A DNA stretch of 64,000 nucleotides from Rebecca billardiae RCC1528. Taxonomy: Eukaryota > Protista > Haptophyta. Below, piece after piece: positions 51,469-64,000 of this stretch. The notes beneath the pieces are model-generated. The model ran no database searches, was not told where the DNA came from, and saw only the letters and a list, made by a program, of their open reading frames with translations. Both the position numbers and the translations under genes were made by a program. Position 1 is the stretch's first letter. The number at the start of each line of letters is the position of its first letter. The stretch is taken from positions 2,294,001 through 2,358,000 of the forward strand of contig OZ251229.1 in assembly GCA_965240325.2 (NCBI GenBank). Direction: 5' to 3'.

Positions 51469-52774
51469 TAAGCTACACGTCACCGGCGGTAGCGCTATGA
51501 CGACACGCCCGACCGGCGGATCGAGGCACGTGATCGATCGATCTCGCGTCACTAATACAGCGGCGCCGATTATACGTCGTATACCGTACTTTGACCGAGC
51601 GAATGAGCGATGGGCCTCGGCCCCGGACTCCGTCTCCGGCCGAGCCGCCCATCAAGCCGGGAGAAGGAGTACCGGGGCTGCTGCCACCATCTGCATGATT
51701 CGTCATATGCCATGTCACGTCCGTCTTAATGCCGCCCTCCGAGGCTGTGTCCGCTTAGCCCCGCCTGGTAGTCGCTTCCGGTGGACCTATCGGCGCAGTA
51801 TCGCGCCGCCCACAGTGCGGGCCTCAGTCAGTGCCACACGCACGGTAGGTAGTCAACGGGGAGCACCCGGACCGGTTTCTTCATTCGAGTCGTCCAGTTC
51901 AGTCTTTGAACAGCTAACAGCGGCATGATATCAGCAGCACCATAGGCCGCGCACACAGGGTCATTGCACTCGTCATTGCCGCCGTGCGAACTACAGCGCT
52001 GCTATCGCAAAGGCGGACTCGGCGAAGCTAAGCGTGTGCTGCCACGCGCGTGAGGCCCGGCCGCGGCTCCCACTTCCCAGGTCCGCCGCTGTCCGAGCGC
52101 AGCGCAGCCGCGCCTCGCCCCCGGGACTTTGGGCTCATGAAGTGTCAGTAAAAAAGCTATACATTCATCATCATGAGGCTTAGCCAGTCCGACGAACTCG
52201 AAGCACGACAGTACTCAGTAGCGGTGATGACGCGATCGTCAGCTGATTCATTACACGGCGGGCGGCGGTCTGACCGACCCACCGCGAATAACGAAACTCG
52301 CATCCATCGTCGACGTCGTCACGCGACGACTATATACATAATATCTATCGTCAGCATCAGCACGCGGTGATGCGCGGCAGCCTACGCCACTCTGACTCGT
52401 CGACGACGCGATGGCAACAGCTAGTGACCGGAACAGCAGTCAACAGACGACGAGACGACGTTAGTACGATAATATGCATGCATGCCGCACTTATTTGAGC
52501 AGAGACTGAGAGAGACGAGAGAGAGAGAGATCGATTGACGAACATTCGTCAGACAGGCAGTGTCCGCAGTGTGAGCTTGCTACCAATTGATGCTGCTGAT
52601 GATGACGATGTCATCAGATTAACTTTATAACCATTCAGGCGGGCATTGCCGGGTTGCACCCGGCAATGCTGCATTCACCCCGGTCCTACCGGAATGCAGG
52701 GCTCGCCCCGCTGGCCTACAGCTCTGTGACCGTCAGCGCCGCGCGCCACATACCAGGCCACCACGACTTCATCA

Positions 52775-53133
52775 ATACTGCTGCACGCATGATGGTACCA
52801 GTAGTGACAGAGTACTGGCGGTACCGTGCTGCTCGCATGGTATGGTACTGCTGCGCGCATGGTATGGTACTGCTGCGTGCATGATGGTATGGTACTGCTG
52901 CGCGCATGGTATGGTACTGCTGTGCGCATGGTAGTATGGTACTCTGCTGCACGCATCGGATCAGGAGTATGTACTGCTGCTGCGCGCATGGTATGGTACT
53001 GCCGCGTGCATGGTATGGTACTGCTGCACGCATGATGGTATGGTACTGGCGGTACTGCTGCGCGCATGGTATGGCACTGCTGTGCGCATGGTATGGTACT
53101 GCTGCGTGCATGGTATGCCGTACTGCTGCACGC
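52775..53133 (+). repeat. 22-25 bp minisatellite, consensus GCATGGTATGGTACTGCTGCGC
   Basis: About a dozen diverged tandem units are directly visible. Confidence 0.9.
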
Positions 53134-53712
53134 AAGACTACAAGCGCGCAGGTGGTGGGAGCCGCAAGCAGAAGCAAGCGCGCAGGTGGTGGGAGTGCTC
53201 GCAGGTGGTGGGAGAAGCAAGAAGCAGCAGCTCGAAGCAGCAGGCACTCCGATGCGGCACCTCCCGAAGCTGCTGCATCCTTCTGACCGCCCGTGGTTTG
53301 CGGACCGGAAGCGTCCGCGACTGCGAGCCGCACGCGCACGCGGTGCGCGCAGCGGTCATGGCGCTGGGTCCGGCGAGCAGCCGGGGTGAGGTTCAGGTAC
53401 GAGGGGCACACACTATTCCGCATGCGCCTTGGCACCGACCACGCGCCGCATCCACTGGGAGATCTGCGGCCGCAAGAAGCGCGCGCCTTGGCGAGGGCGA
53501 AGCATCGTAGACCCGCCTGCGCGCAGTGCTTCCGCACCGCCGGCCGGGGCGGTCCGGCACTGCTTGCTTGGTGTTGGTCCGGCTTCCTCAGCATCATGAC
53601 ATCATCACAGTCCTCACTCCTTCACCGATCACTGTGCACCGATCTCTTGAAGGGAGCGAGCAACGGCGGAGGACGAAGCTGAAGCAGTGTGCTCTTGCCG
53701 AACCGCGTGGTC

Positions 53713-53874
53713 GGCACACACTGGCACACACTGGCACACACTGGCACACACTGGCACACACTGGCACACACTGGCACACACTGGCACACACTGGCACACA
53801 CTGGCACACACTGGCACACACTGGCACACACTGGCACACACTGGCACACACTGGCACACACTGGCACACACTGG

Positions 53875-53908
<34 letters not shown>

Positions 53909-53911
53909 CAC

Positions 53912-53957
<46 letters not shown>

Positions 53958-55739
53958 GCACACACTGGCACACACTGGCACACACTGGCACACACTGGCA
54001 CACACTGGCACACACTGGCACACACTGGCACACACTGGCACACACTGGCACACACTGGCACACACTGGCACACACTGGCACACACTGGCACACACTGGCA
54101 CACACTGGCACACACTGGCACACACTGGCACACACTGGCACACACTGGCACACACTGGCACACACTGGCACACACTGGCACACACTGGCACACACTGGCA
54201 CACACTGGCACACTGGCGAAAGCGAGCCTCCCCAAGGGTGGTTGCTCAGGGTCGCCGACTCCAGCGGAGTCCGGCGCCGGAACTTCACCTCCGATTTTTT
54301 GCGGCGGCGCGGCGTGCGGGGCCGCCGCCGCTGTGGCGGGCCGCTCGGGGCGTGCACGGCGTGGGCTCGTGCGGCCGCTGCCGCGCACGCCGAGCGATCC
54401 GGCGCGGGCTCGCGGCTTGTCGATGGCCTCGCGCGCCGCAGCGCGGCGCGCGCCTTGCCTAGCTTCGCCTGTCTCGCGCCTTGGCCGCCGTGCACGCGTG
54501 CGCCGCCAAACCGCAAGCTCGGCATAGCTCTCAGCCGAGCGTGCACGTGCCTTGCGCGACGCGACGCGGGCATTGCCGGCGGGTGATGTAGCCGTAGTGC
54601 GAGCGCGCGTCGTGAAGCCTCGACGCGGATCGTGAGTGTCTTCAACGTCTCGGTCAGCTGTCGACAACAGCTGACGGCACCAACCACCAATGGACACCAC
54701 GGTCCGCTCCGTTGAACGACTCTCAGGGCTATCGCGACGCTGCAACTCGTGAAGACTAGTCGAGCGTTGTTGTCAAGAAACACACGCCACTATGTCATGC
54801 GTGCGGGCCTTGCGTGACGATGCGACATGACGATCGCCCCGGCAAGAGAGTCAGTCGTCAAGCTTTGAGCACTGCTCAACGCACAGATGGTCCACGCGCG
54901 TACGCGGCATCGTCTCATTGCTCTCGATCCGCGCCGAGGCTTCACGACGCGCGCTCGCACTACGGCTACATCGCCCGCTGGCAATGCCCGCGTCGCGTCG
55001 CGCAAGGCACGTGCACGCTCGGCTGAGAGCTATGCCGAGCTTGCGGTTTGGCGGCGCACGCGTGCACGGCGGCCAAGGCGCGAGACAGGCGAAGCTAGGC
55101 AAGGCGCGCGCCGCGCTGCGGCGCGCGAGGCCATCGACAAGCCGCGAGCCCGCGCCGGATCGCTCGGCGTGCGCGGCAGCGGCCGCACGAGCCCACGCCG
55201 TGCACGCCCCGAGCGGCCCGCCACAGCGGCGGCGGCCCCGCACGCCGCGCCGCCGCAAAAAATCGGAGGTGAAGTTCCGGCGCCGGACTCCGCTGGAGTC
55301 GGCGACCCTGAGCAACCACCCTTGGGGAGGCTCGCTTTCGCCAGTGTGCCAGTGTGTGCCAGTGTGTGCCAGTGTGTGCCAGTGTGTGCCAGTGTGTGCC
55401 AGTGTGTGCCAGTGTGTGCCAGTGTGTGCCAGTGTGTGCCAGTGTGTGCCAGTGTGTGCCAGTGTGTGCCAGTGTGTGCCAGTGTGTGCCAGTGTGTGCC
55501 AGTGTGTGCCAGTGTGTGCCAGTGTGTGCCAGTGTGTGCCAGTGTGTGCCAGTGTGTGCCAGTGTGTGCCAGTGTGTGCCAGTGTGTGCCAGTGTGTGCC
55601 AGTGTGTGCCAGTGTGTGCCAGTGTGTGCCAGTGTGTGCCAGTGTGTGCCAGTGTGTGCCAGTGTGTGCCAGTGTGTGCCAGTGTGTGCCAGTGTGTGCC
55701 AGTGTGTGCCAGTGTGTGCCAGTGTGTGCCAGTGTGTGC

Positions 55740-55785
<46 letters not shown>

Positions 55786-55793
55786 GTGTGTGT

Positions 55794-55846
<53 letters not shown>
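53713..55846. mobile_element. Foldback element: (CACACACTGG)n/(CA)n, ~420-bp arm, 292-bp spacer, inverted arm, (CCAGTGTGTG)n/(GT)n
   Basis: 54211-54632 is the near-perfect reverse complement of 54925-55346 (termini CACTGGCGAAAG...CTTTCGCCAGTG). The flanking 10-mer arrays are mirror images. Confidence 0.85.
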
Positions 55847-55849
<3 letters not shown>

Positions 55850-55991
55850 GGGGAGTCGACTGCTGACAGATTGCACGAAAAACCGTTGGCCCCAATTGGG
55901 ATCTGACTAAACTGTATTCCTCGGGATACCTATTGGAAGGCCATCAACTTTGTAAGAATCACCGGACTTCGCGTGTCCTACCGGAAAACTC

Positions 55992-56039
55992 GCTCCGCTC
56001 GCATGCTTGTTCTGACAGAACAACCAATGCGAGCGGGGC
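55992..56039. other. Strong stem-loop just downstream of the 56049 stop codon
   Basis: CCGCTCGCAT-GC-TTGTTCTG-A-CAGAACAA-CCA-ATGCGAGCGG. Confidence 0.75.
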
Positions 56040-56048
56040 TCGCGATTA

Positions 56049-57014
56049 TCATGCTGCGGCCTGATCTGTGATCACTGATGTGGTGCCAGGGACTGCGGCG
56101 GCGGCGGCTGGAGGGTCAGGGAATGCCGCCTTGACAGCGTTGAGCTCGCGCGCTTCGAGACGGCCGCGCCAGAAAGCCGCCGGCTCAGTGAGTGCGTACG
56201 CGGCGAACTCGTCCGCATGCCTCGAGCTGTGGTAGCCCAGGTCCGACATCCAGCGGCCCATGCGCGCTCCCCACTGCTGCCACGTGGCGTTGGCAGCGTC
56301 CCTGTACGCCGGCTCGAGGGCGTAGCGCGCGTGGCAAAGCTCGTGTGCGAGGGTCGTGTGTGCACCAGTGACGTGCGAGATGACCACCGCTGGCGCCCCG
56401 TGCTCGCGCCATGCGCGCAGGAAGGAGCGCTCAGGCTCGGACATCGCGCGGGCCGGGTCGTCCTCGCCAACGGCAGCCGCTCGCGCCTCAAACGCCTCGA
56501 GCACGGCAGCGTACAGGTTGTGGCCGAGGTACGCGTTGGAGGGGAGCGTGCCCTGTGTTGCCCAGTCGACGAGGCCAGGCGACTCGTCGGCACAGTGCAC
56601 CGGGTGCTCGAGCAGCGTGCTCATCCGGCCGAGGCTGTCATTCATCGTGCGCGCGTCTGCCCACTCCACCACTGCGAGCGCGTCCGAGCGCAGGCTCCAT
56701 CGTGCGGACACAGCGCGGTCCGGCTCGCCGCGACCCGATGTGTCTACCTGGTGGCGCGGGCCGGCGTACTCCTCGCCGAGCGAGACCGCCACGGTGTCGC
56801 CATTCCTCACGTGGCCCTCCAGGGTACCCTCACGTGGCAGCTCGACACCGGCGCGCCACACGAAAAGCCGAGCGCGTGTGACATCCTTCTTCTTGAGGCG
56901 CAGCTTGTTGGCAGCAGCTGTGAGCACTGCCTCGGCATCCGGGCGCACGAGGATGGCGGCCAGCGGGTCGCCCTGACGCGGCCCTACGTTCAGTGTCAAC
57001 GTCAGCCTAATCAT
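56049..57014 (-). CDS. Hypothetical protein: N-terminal doublecortin/ubiquitin-like domain plus C-terminal HExxH (zincin-like) domain
   Basis: AVLTAAANKLRLKK..ARLF...GVEL......VRNGDTVAVSLGEEY is a DCX-like signature. TLAHELCHARY...DLGY.....DEFAAY gives HExxH plus a distal Glu. Confidence 0.7.
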   Translation of the reverse strand: MIRLTLTLNVGPRQGDPLAAILVRPDAEAVLTAAANKLRLKKKDVTRARLFVWRAGVELPREGTLEGHVRNGDTVAVSLGEEYAGPRHQVDTSGRGEPDRAVSARWSLRSDALAVVEWADARTMNDSLGRMSTLLEHPVHCADESPGLVDWATQGTLPSNAYLGHNLYAAVLEAFEARAAAVGEDDPARAMSEPERSFLRAWREHGAPAVVISHVTGAHTTLAHELCHARYALEPAYRDAANATWQQWGARMGRWMSDLGYHSSRHADEFAAYALTEPAAFWRGRLEARELNAVKAAFPDPPAAAAAVPGTTSVITDQAAA

Positions 57015-59135: not shown

Positions 59136-59972
59136 ATGCCCAGCACCCGCAACATCTCGGATGCGCACGAGCGCAAGCGGTGGCGACCAGACCCGGCGCA
59201 GAGGCTGGTCCTCGAAGCTGTCTTCATGGTGTCCAACATGCCCAGCCGCCTCACCGTCGATTCACTGGCGCAGTCGCTGAAGATTGGCCGGCGCCAGGCC
59301 CGGATCTGGTTCCAGAACAAGCGGCAGCGCATGCGCAAGCTGTATGGAGCCAGCGCCGTGCCGAACTGCACCCTTGAGGGGCCGGCCGCCGCGATACTCC
59401 CGACGCTCCTCTTGATGCAGGCGCGTCCTAAAGCGCTGAATGCGGAGCTGCCTGGCATGGCGCTCATCTCCCCCCCCCCGCACCTGCCACAACTCGACTG
59501 GGCACCATCAGAGCCGGCGCCGACCGAGTCGCCGACGATGTCGCTGCCACAGCCGGAAGCGTCCATGCCCATGGCCTCGGTGTCACCGCCTCTGCAGTCC
59601 ATCGGTCCACCAATAGTGCCCGCGCCCCATCCTCCGGCCATGTCCTCGCTCGTCGCCGACGTGCCGCCCTTCGACGTCTTGCTCGGGCGCGAAATCGTGA
59701 GCTCCATGGCGAGCGCTGTCGTCCCGCCATTGCCATCACCGCGCACGGAAAACTCTCAAGCCGAGCCCAATGCCGGCTATCCGATGGCGAGCTCTCGCGC
59801 CGGCAACCTCTCGAGCAAGGAAGCACCCAACTACCTGCAGAGCTCGTCCCACTTCATCATCGGGCCGGAGCTCTCACATGCGCTCTCGTCAACTCCACCG
59901 TTCCTGCCGTCCGAGTCCGAGCTGGATGTGAACGGCCGGCGCCGAGTCCACCATGCCCTGCGGACAACTTAG
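59136..59972 (+). CDS. Homeodomain transcription factor (non-TALE, WFQNKR) with Pro/Ser-rich tail; a further exon ending at 60085 is possible
   Basis: ERKRWRPDPAQRLVLEAVFMVSNMPSRLTVDSLAQSLKIGRRQARIWFQNKRQRMRK. A downstream coding-like LLELMLSPALITDDAMSIMNDFCNGVLGCIM* lies in another frame. Confidence 0.88.
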   Translation: MPSTRNISDAHERKRWRPDPAQRLVLEAVFMVSNMPSRLTVDSLAQSLKIGRRQARIWFQNKRQRMRKLYGASAVPNCTLEGPAAAILPTLLLMQARPKALNAELPGMALISPPPHLPQLDWAPSEPAPTESPTMSLPQPEASMPMASVSPPLQSIGPPIVPAPHPPAMSSLVADVPPFDVLLGREIVSSMASAVVPPLPSPRTENSQAEPNAGYPMASSRAGNLSSKEAPNYLQSSSHFIIGPELSHALSSTPPFLPSESELDVNGRRRVHHALRTT

Positions 59973-63386: not shown

Positions 63387-64000
63387 TGGCCCGCGGTGCA
63401 GGGCGGAACGCGCAGCGTGGAGCCCGCTCCGTGGGCCCTAACCACGTTTCAAAAAGATCTTTGATCAAGAAAAAAGGGACGGGGGACGATTTTCAAGGCT
63501 GGAAGAGACCGAGTTTCGAATTTTGAGACCGCAAAGAGACATCGATTAGCGAGAAATGGACGCGCCCACGACTTCAGATAAGCAAAGCGGGAGTGACGCC
63601 CGTCCATAAACTTCACGCCCTTTAGGATCCCTAACGTAACGAACCGTTACACGCGATTTTTTCCAGCCAATGAGATTGCCGCAAGGTCAAGGAGCGACGA
63701 CGACGTATCTAGATAGCCAAGCCGGCACAGCATTACTTGTGTGCTGGGCTGCCGCTTTGGGGGTTCTGATCAATCACCCAGGGCCCGGTCTGGTCATAAA
63801 TGAGCCCGCCGTTTATGACGACCCATTCATGTACATGTATGAACAATGGGTCATTAGACCGCGTCGTATCTTAAAAAACCGCTTCATCACGTTGGACCGC
63901 GTCGTATCAATGCTCGTAAATGAAATTCTATTCTACCGCTTCACGTAGTAACCCTGATGATGATCATAGATTATGGAAGATGCTCGCGTCGAGTCGTCGC
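63387..64000 (+). mobile_element. Family A element, copy 6, 5' part (3' end not in window)
   Basis: TGGCCCGCGGTGCAGGGCGGAACGCGCAGCGTGGAGCCCG..CACGTTTCAAAAAGATCTTTGATCAAGAAAAAAGGGACG..GAGACCGAGTTTCGA. Homology is traceable to ~63683, and the extent beyond that is uncertain. Confidence 0.75.

Follow-up and report, generated by a model that had tools for sequence, protein, structure and literature searches.

Foldback elements of the P superfamily, such as Galileo of Drosophila, consist mostly of their terminal inverted repeats (TIRs), are mostly non-coding, have termini that start with CA and are flanked by 7-bp target site duplications (TSDs); the length of their TIRs is dynamic, and adjacent sequence can be drawn into the inverted repeat (PMC3573991, PMC4168063). 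Non-autonomous Helitron2/Helentron elements (HINE/DINE-type), whose features are compiled in PMC5148889, have neither TIRs nor TSDs, form hairpins at both termini, insert at AT-rich T|T-type sites, and combine conserved ends with variable, tandem-repeat-rich interiors (PMC5148889, PMC4067079). Inverted repeats can also mediate inverted duplication, for example through fold-back priming (PMC4352052, PMC10622511, PMC4417113), and the known kinds comprise human duplication-triplication/inverted-duplication rearrangements (DUP-TRP/INV-DUP), yeast fold-back priming and organelle U-turn inversions (PMC4352052, PMC11293582, PMC10622511, PMC4417113). Here, we describe a 2.1-kb palindrome at positions 53713-55846 of a 64,000-nucleotide stretch of the haptophyte Rebecca billardiae RCC1528 (contig OZ251229.1, positions 2,294,001 to 2,358,000; hereafter the window, to which all coordinates without a contig name refer). 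The palindrome very probably has a nested origin, in which a foldback transposon (A) inserted into a non-coding carrier element (B), an arm-templated inverted duplication followed, and the product was spread by B. Both the arrangement, a foldback miniature inverted-repeat transposable element within another non-autonomous element, and the rearrangement that it carries are of known kinds. In our literature search, no paper on foldback or P-type elements in haptophytes was found.

The palindrome is built from 10-mer arrays, inverted arms and a spacer. The left array (53713-54213) contains CACACACTGG units, 16 plus 26 of them perfect, split by an interrupted (CA)n block at 53875-53955, and the right array (55344-55748) contains 40.5 perfect CCAGTGTGTG units and gives way to (GT)n at 55742-55846. 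This agrees with an earlier note, made from the letters of the window, which had reported mirror-image arrays of about 40 units per side. The same note described near-perfect inverted arms of about 420 bp around a 292-bp spacer; we measure arms of 423 bp (54214-54636 and 54921-55343) that differ from each other by 4 mismatches, and a spacer of 284 bp (54637-54920). The longest inverted-repeat pair, 53879-54636 versus 54921-55678, spans 758 nt at 97% identity. The innermost truncated unit, described earlier as mirrored, is indeed an exact mirror image on the two sides, together with an approximately 16-nt unique stretch adjoining each arm, and the absence of a visible TSD holds as well: the outer edges of the arrays show no direct repeat. 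In the genome assembly (G000; 72 Mb in 41 contigs, with a GC content of approximately 60-77% across the window), the palindrome occurs at 7 loci on 6 contigs. The flanks and the numbers of units per side differ between these loci, and the exact junction is common to all of them.

The core of the palindrome (54233-55324; 1,092 bp, no strand assigned) is one copy of a non-autonomous foldback DNA transposon, with 404-bp arms at 54233-54636 and 54921-55324 around the spacer. Genome-wide, the arm yielded 144 first-look candidates and, spread over many contigs, 40 scored matches with an identity of 94% or more; the spacer yielded 60 candidates. We examined 12 solo copies of this family A (L028 and L030-L040; arms 86-98% identical), and none of them carries the 10-mer array or carrier sequence (0/12 each); the earlier note had asked whether arm copies are always capped by arrays. 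All 12 keep the termini CAAGGGTGG...CCACCCTTG, and the family ends CAAGGGTGGTCAGGG...CCCTGACCACCCTTG, of the CAAGGG...CCCTTG type, are conserved in them. Among the 6 solo copies in which both ends are readable, 4 have perfect 7-bp TSDs (L028, L030, L031, and L037; CCGGCAG, GTTGTGC, CAGCAAC, and GGCGCGG) and a fifth has a near match. The conserved ends and the TSDs of the solo copies together place the window transposon at 54233-55324, so that the arrays lie outside its termini; the true ends are 18-19 bp inward from the arrays. The arrays are thus not extended transposon termini, contrary to what had been proposed earlier.

Every A copy that we examined is 1.1 kb long and non-coding, and no other copy of A or B is present in the window. 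With long TIRs that make up most of the element, termini starting with CA and 7-bp duplications, family A behaves like P/Galileo-type foldback elements, an analogy that leaves membership in this group unproven. As in Galileo, the inverted repeat has been dynamic in length and has taken in adjacent sequence. Here, however, the extension goes outward, beyond the transposon end, into DNA of the host element and a minisatellite, and since it lies outside the transposon end, the mobile unit A is not enlarged. Further differences from Galileo are the lack of a linked P-type transposase and the host, which is a GC-rich alga rather than a fly. Only one match to a P-type transposase-like domain is present in the genome (PF21787, 32 bits, above the cut-off), at C21:1533970-1534365 on the minus strand and within an open frame of 1,322 amino acids; like the loci on C13, C19, and C37 discussed below, it was judged by match coordinates only. 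The frame on C21 is a candidate enzyme for the numerous foldback families with CAAGGG termini and 7-bp TSDs.

The palindrome variant of B occurs exactly 7 times, and the palindrome is never found outside B. Besides the window, copies with 100%-identical arms and spacer are present at 6 loci (C38, C29, C22, C12:1.30 Mb, C8:0.146 Mb, and C7). Among the 7 copies, the similarity always runs from approximately 52630 to 56046/56049 of the window, and the flanks beyond are unrelated and diverge exactly at these ends. Carrier element B (52630-56046, plus strand) is 3.4 kb long, non-coding, and contains the whole palindrome; the TAT at 56047-56049 represents either the last bases of B or a preferred target sequence. 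Its left end (52631-52710, plus strand) consists of a hairpin with an 11-bp stem followed by a second hairpin, and 22-bp tandem repeats, detected with a tandem repeat finder and variable in copy number among B copies, occupy 52827-53134 (plus strand). The B right region with the right-end hairpins (55847-56046, plus strand) is 100% identical to that of the window in all copies except that on C29, which is 98% identical. The 39-nt left terminus has 44 occurrences in the genome, of which 29 are perfect, and B family members, recognised by a left end paired with a right end, are between 2.3 and 11.6 kb long. The largest, C19:1167352-1178937 (11.6 kb) and C37:242383-252582 (10.2 kb), might hold the enzyme of B or nested elements.

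Two older copies of B establish the order of events. The copy at C8:750701-754147, whose ends are 100% identical to those of the window, contains A flanked by a direct 7-bp duplication (TGGAGGC on the left and GGGAGGC on the right, matching at 6 of 7 positions) and a single array, (CCAGTGTGTG)26 followed by (GT)n, that adjoins the B right end. A is separated from the rest of B by unique DNA, of which 255 bp lie on the array side and approximately 330 bp on the opposite one. Approximately 12 further B members match positions 1-104 of the 255-bp segment and approximately 200 bp of its counterpart at 88-96% identity; both segments are hence native to B, and their absence from the 7 young copies is a derived state. 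In the B left region, this copy matches the window at 88%, because the number of 22-bp tandem repeats differs between B copies. The second older copy (C13:556850-559203; 2,354 bp) also has ends that are 100% identical to those of the window. It matches the 255-bp segment at 97%, from a point 59 bp from the B interior, compared to 109 bp plus A in the C8 copy, and the approximately 500 bp that separate this segment from the B right end could hold a single array but no more. These coordinates indicate that the C13 copy has neither foldback A nor a second array. In the older C8 copy, a segment of approximately 100 bp directly to the left of the foldback (C8:752016-752120, equivalent to L029:1001-1100) has 100%-identical matches at no fewer than 15 other loci and 1,250 first-look candidates; it is the end of another, very high-copy element, and a 22-nt part of it is repeated on the right, 118 bp from the foldback.

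The distribution of the 10-mer agrees with this picture. A 40-mer of four units occurs 307 times on the forward and 301 times on the reverse strand of the genome, and 288 and 301 of these occurrences, respectively, are explained by the eight copies that were sequenced. The 19 extra forward occurrences would fit one further array of approximately 22 perfect units, in the orientation expected for the C13 copy. The arrays are thus private to one B subfamily. The right array of the window with its (GT)n (55344-55846, plus strand; 40 units, then the interrupted (GT)n) is the original one, as the older C8 copy has it at the same place and in the same direction, and the join between the 255-bp segment and the array is retained in the C13 copy, where its position and orientation relative to B are likewise unchanged. 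It is preceded by a B-native flank with the truncated unit (55325-55343, plus strand) that starts with the retained copy of the target duplication, GGGAGGC, and equals the C8 sequence apart from an 11-bp indel and the lost 255-bp segment. The left array (53713-54216 with its truncated unit, plus strand) is the secondary, mirror array, which is missing from both older copies.

The 7 young copies record in detail how their left side arose. A is not bordered by a direct repeat in them: GCCTCCC on its left is GGGAGGC, the sequence on its right, in reverse complement, and terminates a mirror copy of the B-native flank at 54217-54232 (plus strand). Both deletions beside the right arm, of 255 bp and 11 bp, are mirrored on the left. 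The left arm equals the array-side arm of the older C8 copy at all informative sites. The right arm is chimeric: its 4 inner sites equal the other C8 arm, and its outer end has the array-side form, including a TTGC insertion. The spacer is inverted relative to B. Read along the top strand, a young element consists of three pieces, namely the B left region as far as the junction; a C8-type segment in reverse complement, which runs from inside the far arm through the spacer and the array-side arm into the array; and a C8-type stretch that starts inside the array-side arm and extends to the right end of B. A 23-mer across the junction between the B left region and the mirror array (53692-53714, plus strand) occurs exactly 7 times in the genome, with up to 2 mismatches allowed, always in mirror-array copies, while the older C8 copy runs on at this point with different, B-native sequence. 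Since the junction is unique, the event happened once and B transposed afterwards. The nesting of A in B, the polarity of the change, the seven copies and the unique junction can all be read directly from the copies.

A breakpoint within an existing inverted repeat, a unique non-homologous junction and a reverse-complemented flank are the marks of inverted-repeat-mediated inverted duplication. The present case shares with DUP-TRP/INV-DUP, fold-back inversions and U-turn switches both this pairing of one breakpoint inside the repeat with a second, non-homologous junction and the outcome, an inverted duplicate of the DNA beside one repeat arm (PMC4352052, PMC11293582, PMC10622511, PMC4417113). 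Unlike in those systems, the scale is approximately 0.5 kb, within a transposon nested in another transposon; approximately 235 bp was deleted, rather than a triplication produced; and the product was later amplified by transposition.

In the history that we propose, foldback A would have inserted into a non-coding carrier B that already bore a single array, composed of (GT)n plus 10-mer units, approximately 255 bp from the insertion point. A 255-bp deletion would then have placed the array beside the right arm. Next, one arm-templated rearrangement would have produced, on the left side, a reverse-complement copy of the outer right arm with its flank and a portion of the array. This rearrangement would comprise one non-homologous jump, at the junction 53712/53713, and one homologous switch inside the arms; the copy would have taken the place of approximately 235 bp of B and of the original target duplication on the left, with the loop ending up flipped. 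The rearrangement could have occurred as a replication U-turn with a switch back, or in two steps, with arm-by-arm recombination flipping the loop and fold-back priming or gene conversion copying outward from the right arm. B would then have transposed, bringing the palindrome to 7 loci, after which the arrays would have drifted in length and the window copy would have gained its left (CA)n block in a second round of mirror copying. The enzymology of the duplication is inferred. That the mirror duplication was a strand switch made while B moved via a single-stranded or rolling-circle intermediate, with the foldback arms snapping into a hairpin, seems to us unlikely. If it were true, the 7 later insertions would show that the transposition machinery tolerates a near-perfect palindrome of 2.1 kb, and the family would preserve a natural trace of template switching in a eukaryotic transposon that is hairpin-ended and of unclassified type.

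Several observations weigh against the nested history or limit its detail. At the left junction, 9 nt (CGTGGTCGG) form a filler for which no source was found. There are no informative sites between arm positions of approximately 20 and 395, so that the switch point was not located and the one-event and two-step routes are inseparable. The C13 copy, as stated above, was mapped by match coordinates only. No transposase is linked to family A. Finally, B has no asymmetric terminal inverted repeat, no TC...CTRR ends and no Rep match near its 44 left termini, so that its class can be assigned only tentatively.

The C/A-rich 5' side and the G/T-rich 3' side of the palindrome do superficially resemble a linear minichromosome, and the array lengths vary among copies. 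The earlier note had accordingly suggested that the arrays are telomere-like caps, made by slippage or slide-back synthesis on a linear intermediate of a telomere-bearing mobile or extrachromosomal element. We consider this extremely improbable. The arrays are internal to B rather than at the ends of anything linear, and their outer edges join B identically in 7/7 copies; the older copies have a single array, which is part of B and lies 255 bp from the foldback in the C8 copy; and solo foldbacks have no arrays. Moreover, the terminal repeat of this genome is TTAGGG (a 72-mer of it matches 1,521 times in forward and 1,772 times in reverse orientation, for example in the block C1:5089339-5090513), to which the 10-mer is, by its letters, unrelated. 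The 10-mer looks like a derivative of (GT)n in which CCA is inserted every fourth dinucleotide, and it is continuous with the adjacent (GT)n. Another proposal sees the outer array edges as the true ends of a longer foldback of the Galileo type, in which the arrays would be subterminal tandem repeats; it has a precedent in Galileo and Tetris, which have tandem repeats inside long TIRs in numbers that differ between arms (PMC3573991, PMC4079207). It is nonetheless very unlikely here: the outer array edges show neither a TSD nor a conserved terminus, the arrays lie outside the conserved CAAGGG termini and past the mirrored target duplication, and the (GT)n at the end of the right array runs on into B without a break. 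Furthermore, the 10-mer unit occurs neither outside B nor elsewhere within B, and arrays plus arms with a direct target duplication in non-B DNA were not found.

The earlier view that the arrays belong to the inverted-repeat structure, and are not a microsatellite split by an insertion, stands; insertion of A into an array is ruled out by the older C8 copy. A relationship to CMC/EnSpm elements, which have CACTA/CACTG termini and 2-3 bp TSDs, had been raised on the basis of a CACTG motif. The resemblance is coincidental, as CACTGG merely lies within the array unit and the true termini are CAAGGG with a 7-bp TSD. Two tailed retroelements fused head-to-head, also suggested, fail as an explanation because the core is a TIR element with a TSD. 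Long-read chemistries can yield fold-back chimeras, and a misassembly or chimeric read could have created a false palindrome; the chance of this is negligible, however, since the same exact junction recurs at 7 loci with differing flanks and unit counts, and the copy at C8:144667 carries an additional 371-bp deletion in the B left region. Separately, a long forward TTAGGG block at C2:21273-21956 lies 21 kb inside the contig start, in the orientation of a right end, and may be an interstitial telomere array or a mis-join.

To what class B belongs is a matter of inference, and the odds that it is Helitron-like are, by analogy with described elements, roughly even. Like Helitron2/Helentron elements, B has no TIR or TSD (none was found at its ends), has hairpins at both termini, sits at AT-rich sites (its flanks mostly read ...ATA on the left and TAT... 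on the right, i.e., ATA|TAT-type sites) and combines conserved ends with a variable, tandem-repeat-rich interior (PMC5148889, PMC4067079). The predicted DNA folds are strong, with -28 kcal/mol (z -5.8) at the left end and -20.6 kcal/mol (z -5.4) at the right end. Unlike these elements, an asymmetric terminal inverted repeat was not detected in B (the best inverted local alignment scores 17, compared to 13.7 +/- 2.0 and a maximum of 21 for shuffles), its termini differ from those described, and no Rep/Hel-encoding partner shares a terminus with it. B begins with (A)CCATTCAGG and ends with GCTCGCGAT, which is not the canonical 5'-TC...CTRR-3' of Helitrons inserted between A and T. Five matches to the Helitron Rep domain (PF14214) are present in the genome, none of them near any of the 44 B left termini or the listed right termini. 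Pfam searches of open reading frames (ORFs) inside B and A gave nothing meaningful, the sole match being DUF3645 at 18 bits, below the cut-off, and no Rfam family matched window positions 52000-56600.

The same nested history could also have involved a B that is not a rolling-circle, Helitron-type element, but belongs to another TIR-less class, for example one retroposed via an AT-site-specific long interspersed nuclear element, or is wholly unclassified. The missing asymmetric terminal inverted repeat, the non-canonical ends and the lack of a Rep gene near any B terminus all fit this, and we regard it as a serious candidate, if somewhat short of an even chance. Three features argue in the other direction: both ends are kept to the base across approximately 44 copies while the interiors vary from 2.3 to 11.6 kb, as is typically seen in DNA elements that depend on their two ends; both termini have strong hairpins; and there is no poly(A) or microsatellite tail. 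For the insertion in the window, no second-haplotype empty site was found, and both flanks are single-copy.

Two further observations concern the ends of B and the Rep matches. The B ends share a direct, not inverted, subterminal 12-mer, GTCCTACCGGAA (52682-52714 and 55975-56002), followed by similar GC-rich sequence, which is unusual for described Helitron-type ends. The five PF14214 matches (C39:342498, C7:282420, C13:616682, C23:65118, and C33:783174) lie in uninterrupted frames of 2,606-3,640 amino acids, and 4 of the 5 score identically, which suggests a young autonomous Helitron family.

Compared with the window, the sequenced non-array parts of the 7 young copies are 100% identical in the left region, the spacer and one arm, apart from indels, and the other arm has the same four arm-to-arm differences in every copy. 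The arrays vary in length: there are 31-68 units per side, depending on copy and side, with perfect runs of 7 to 68 units, and a CACACACCGG variant unit on the left is common to 4 copies. The (CA)n block inside the left array is found only in the window copy. It reads (CA)13 cg (CA)6 cg (CA)16 and then continues into units, which is the mirror of the outer part of right-hand arrays; the corresponding patterns are (CA)25 cgta (CA)5 cg (CA)16 in the window copy and (CA)20 cg (CA)7 cg (CA)17 in the C22 copy. Outside the block are the 16 further units, which have no right-hand counterpart. Because the block mirrors the right-hand interruptions and is confined to the window copy, it points to a second mirror-copy event in this copy. 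Outward copying between the arms thus appears, from these patterns, to recur.

Three evolutionary stages are unusually well preserved in this one genome: the empty carrier, the carrier with the foldback, and the palindrome extended and then amplified. The series shows that foldback arms are able to template the inverted duplication of neighbouring DNA, and that the product can be spread by a second mobile element. It also removes a tempting wrong reading, that of a telomere-capped mobile element. For annotation, all 10-mer arrays can be assigned to one carrier subfamily, and long palindromes with arrays of variable length such as these are likely fragile sites.

Pfam searches of the other neighbouring ORFs gave nothing relevant. 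A different hairpin-ended element occupies window positions 63387-64000; it starts with TGGCCCGCGG after ...CTAGTTA and has a Helitron-like end, with a sequence unrelated to that of B. Downstream of the carrier insertion, at a distance of 3 kb, an ORF on the plus strand (59136-59972) encodes a clear homeodomain (PF00046, E 1e-14).

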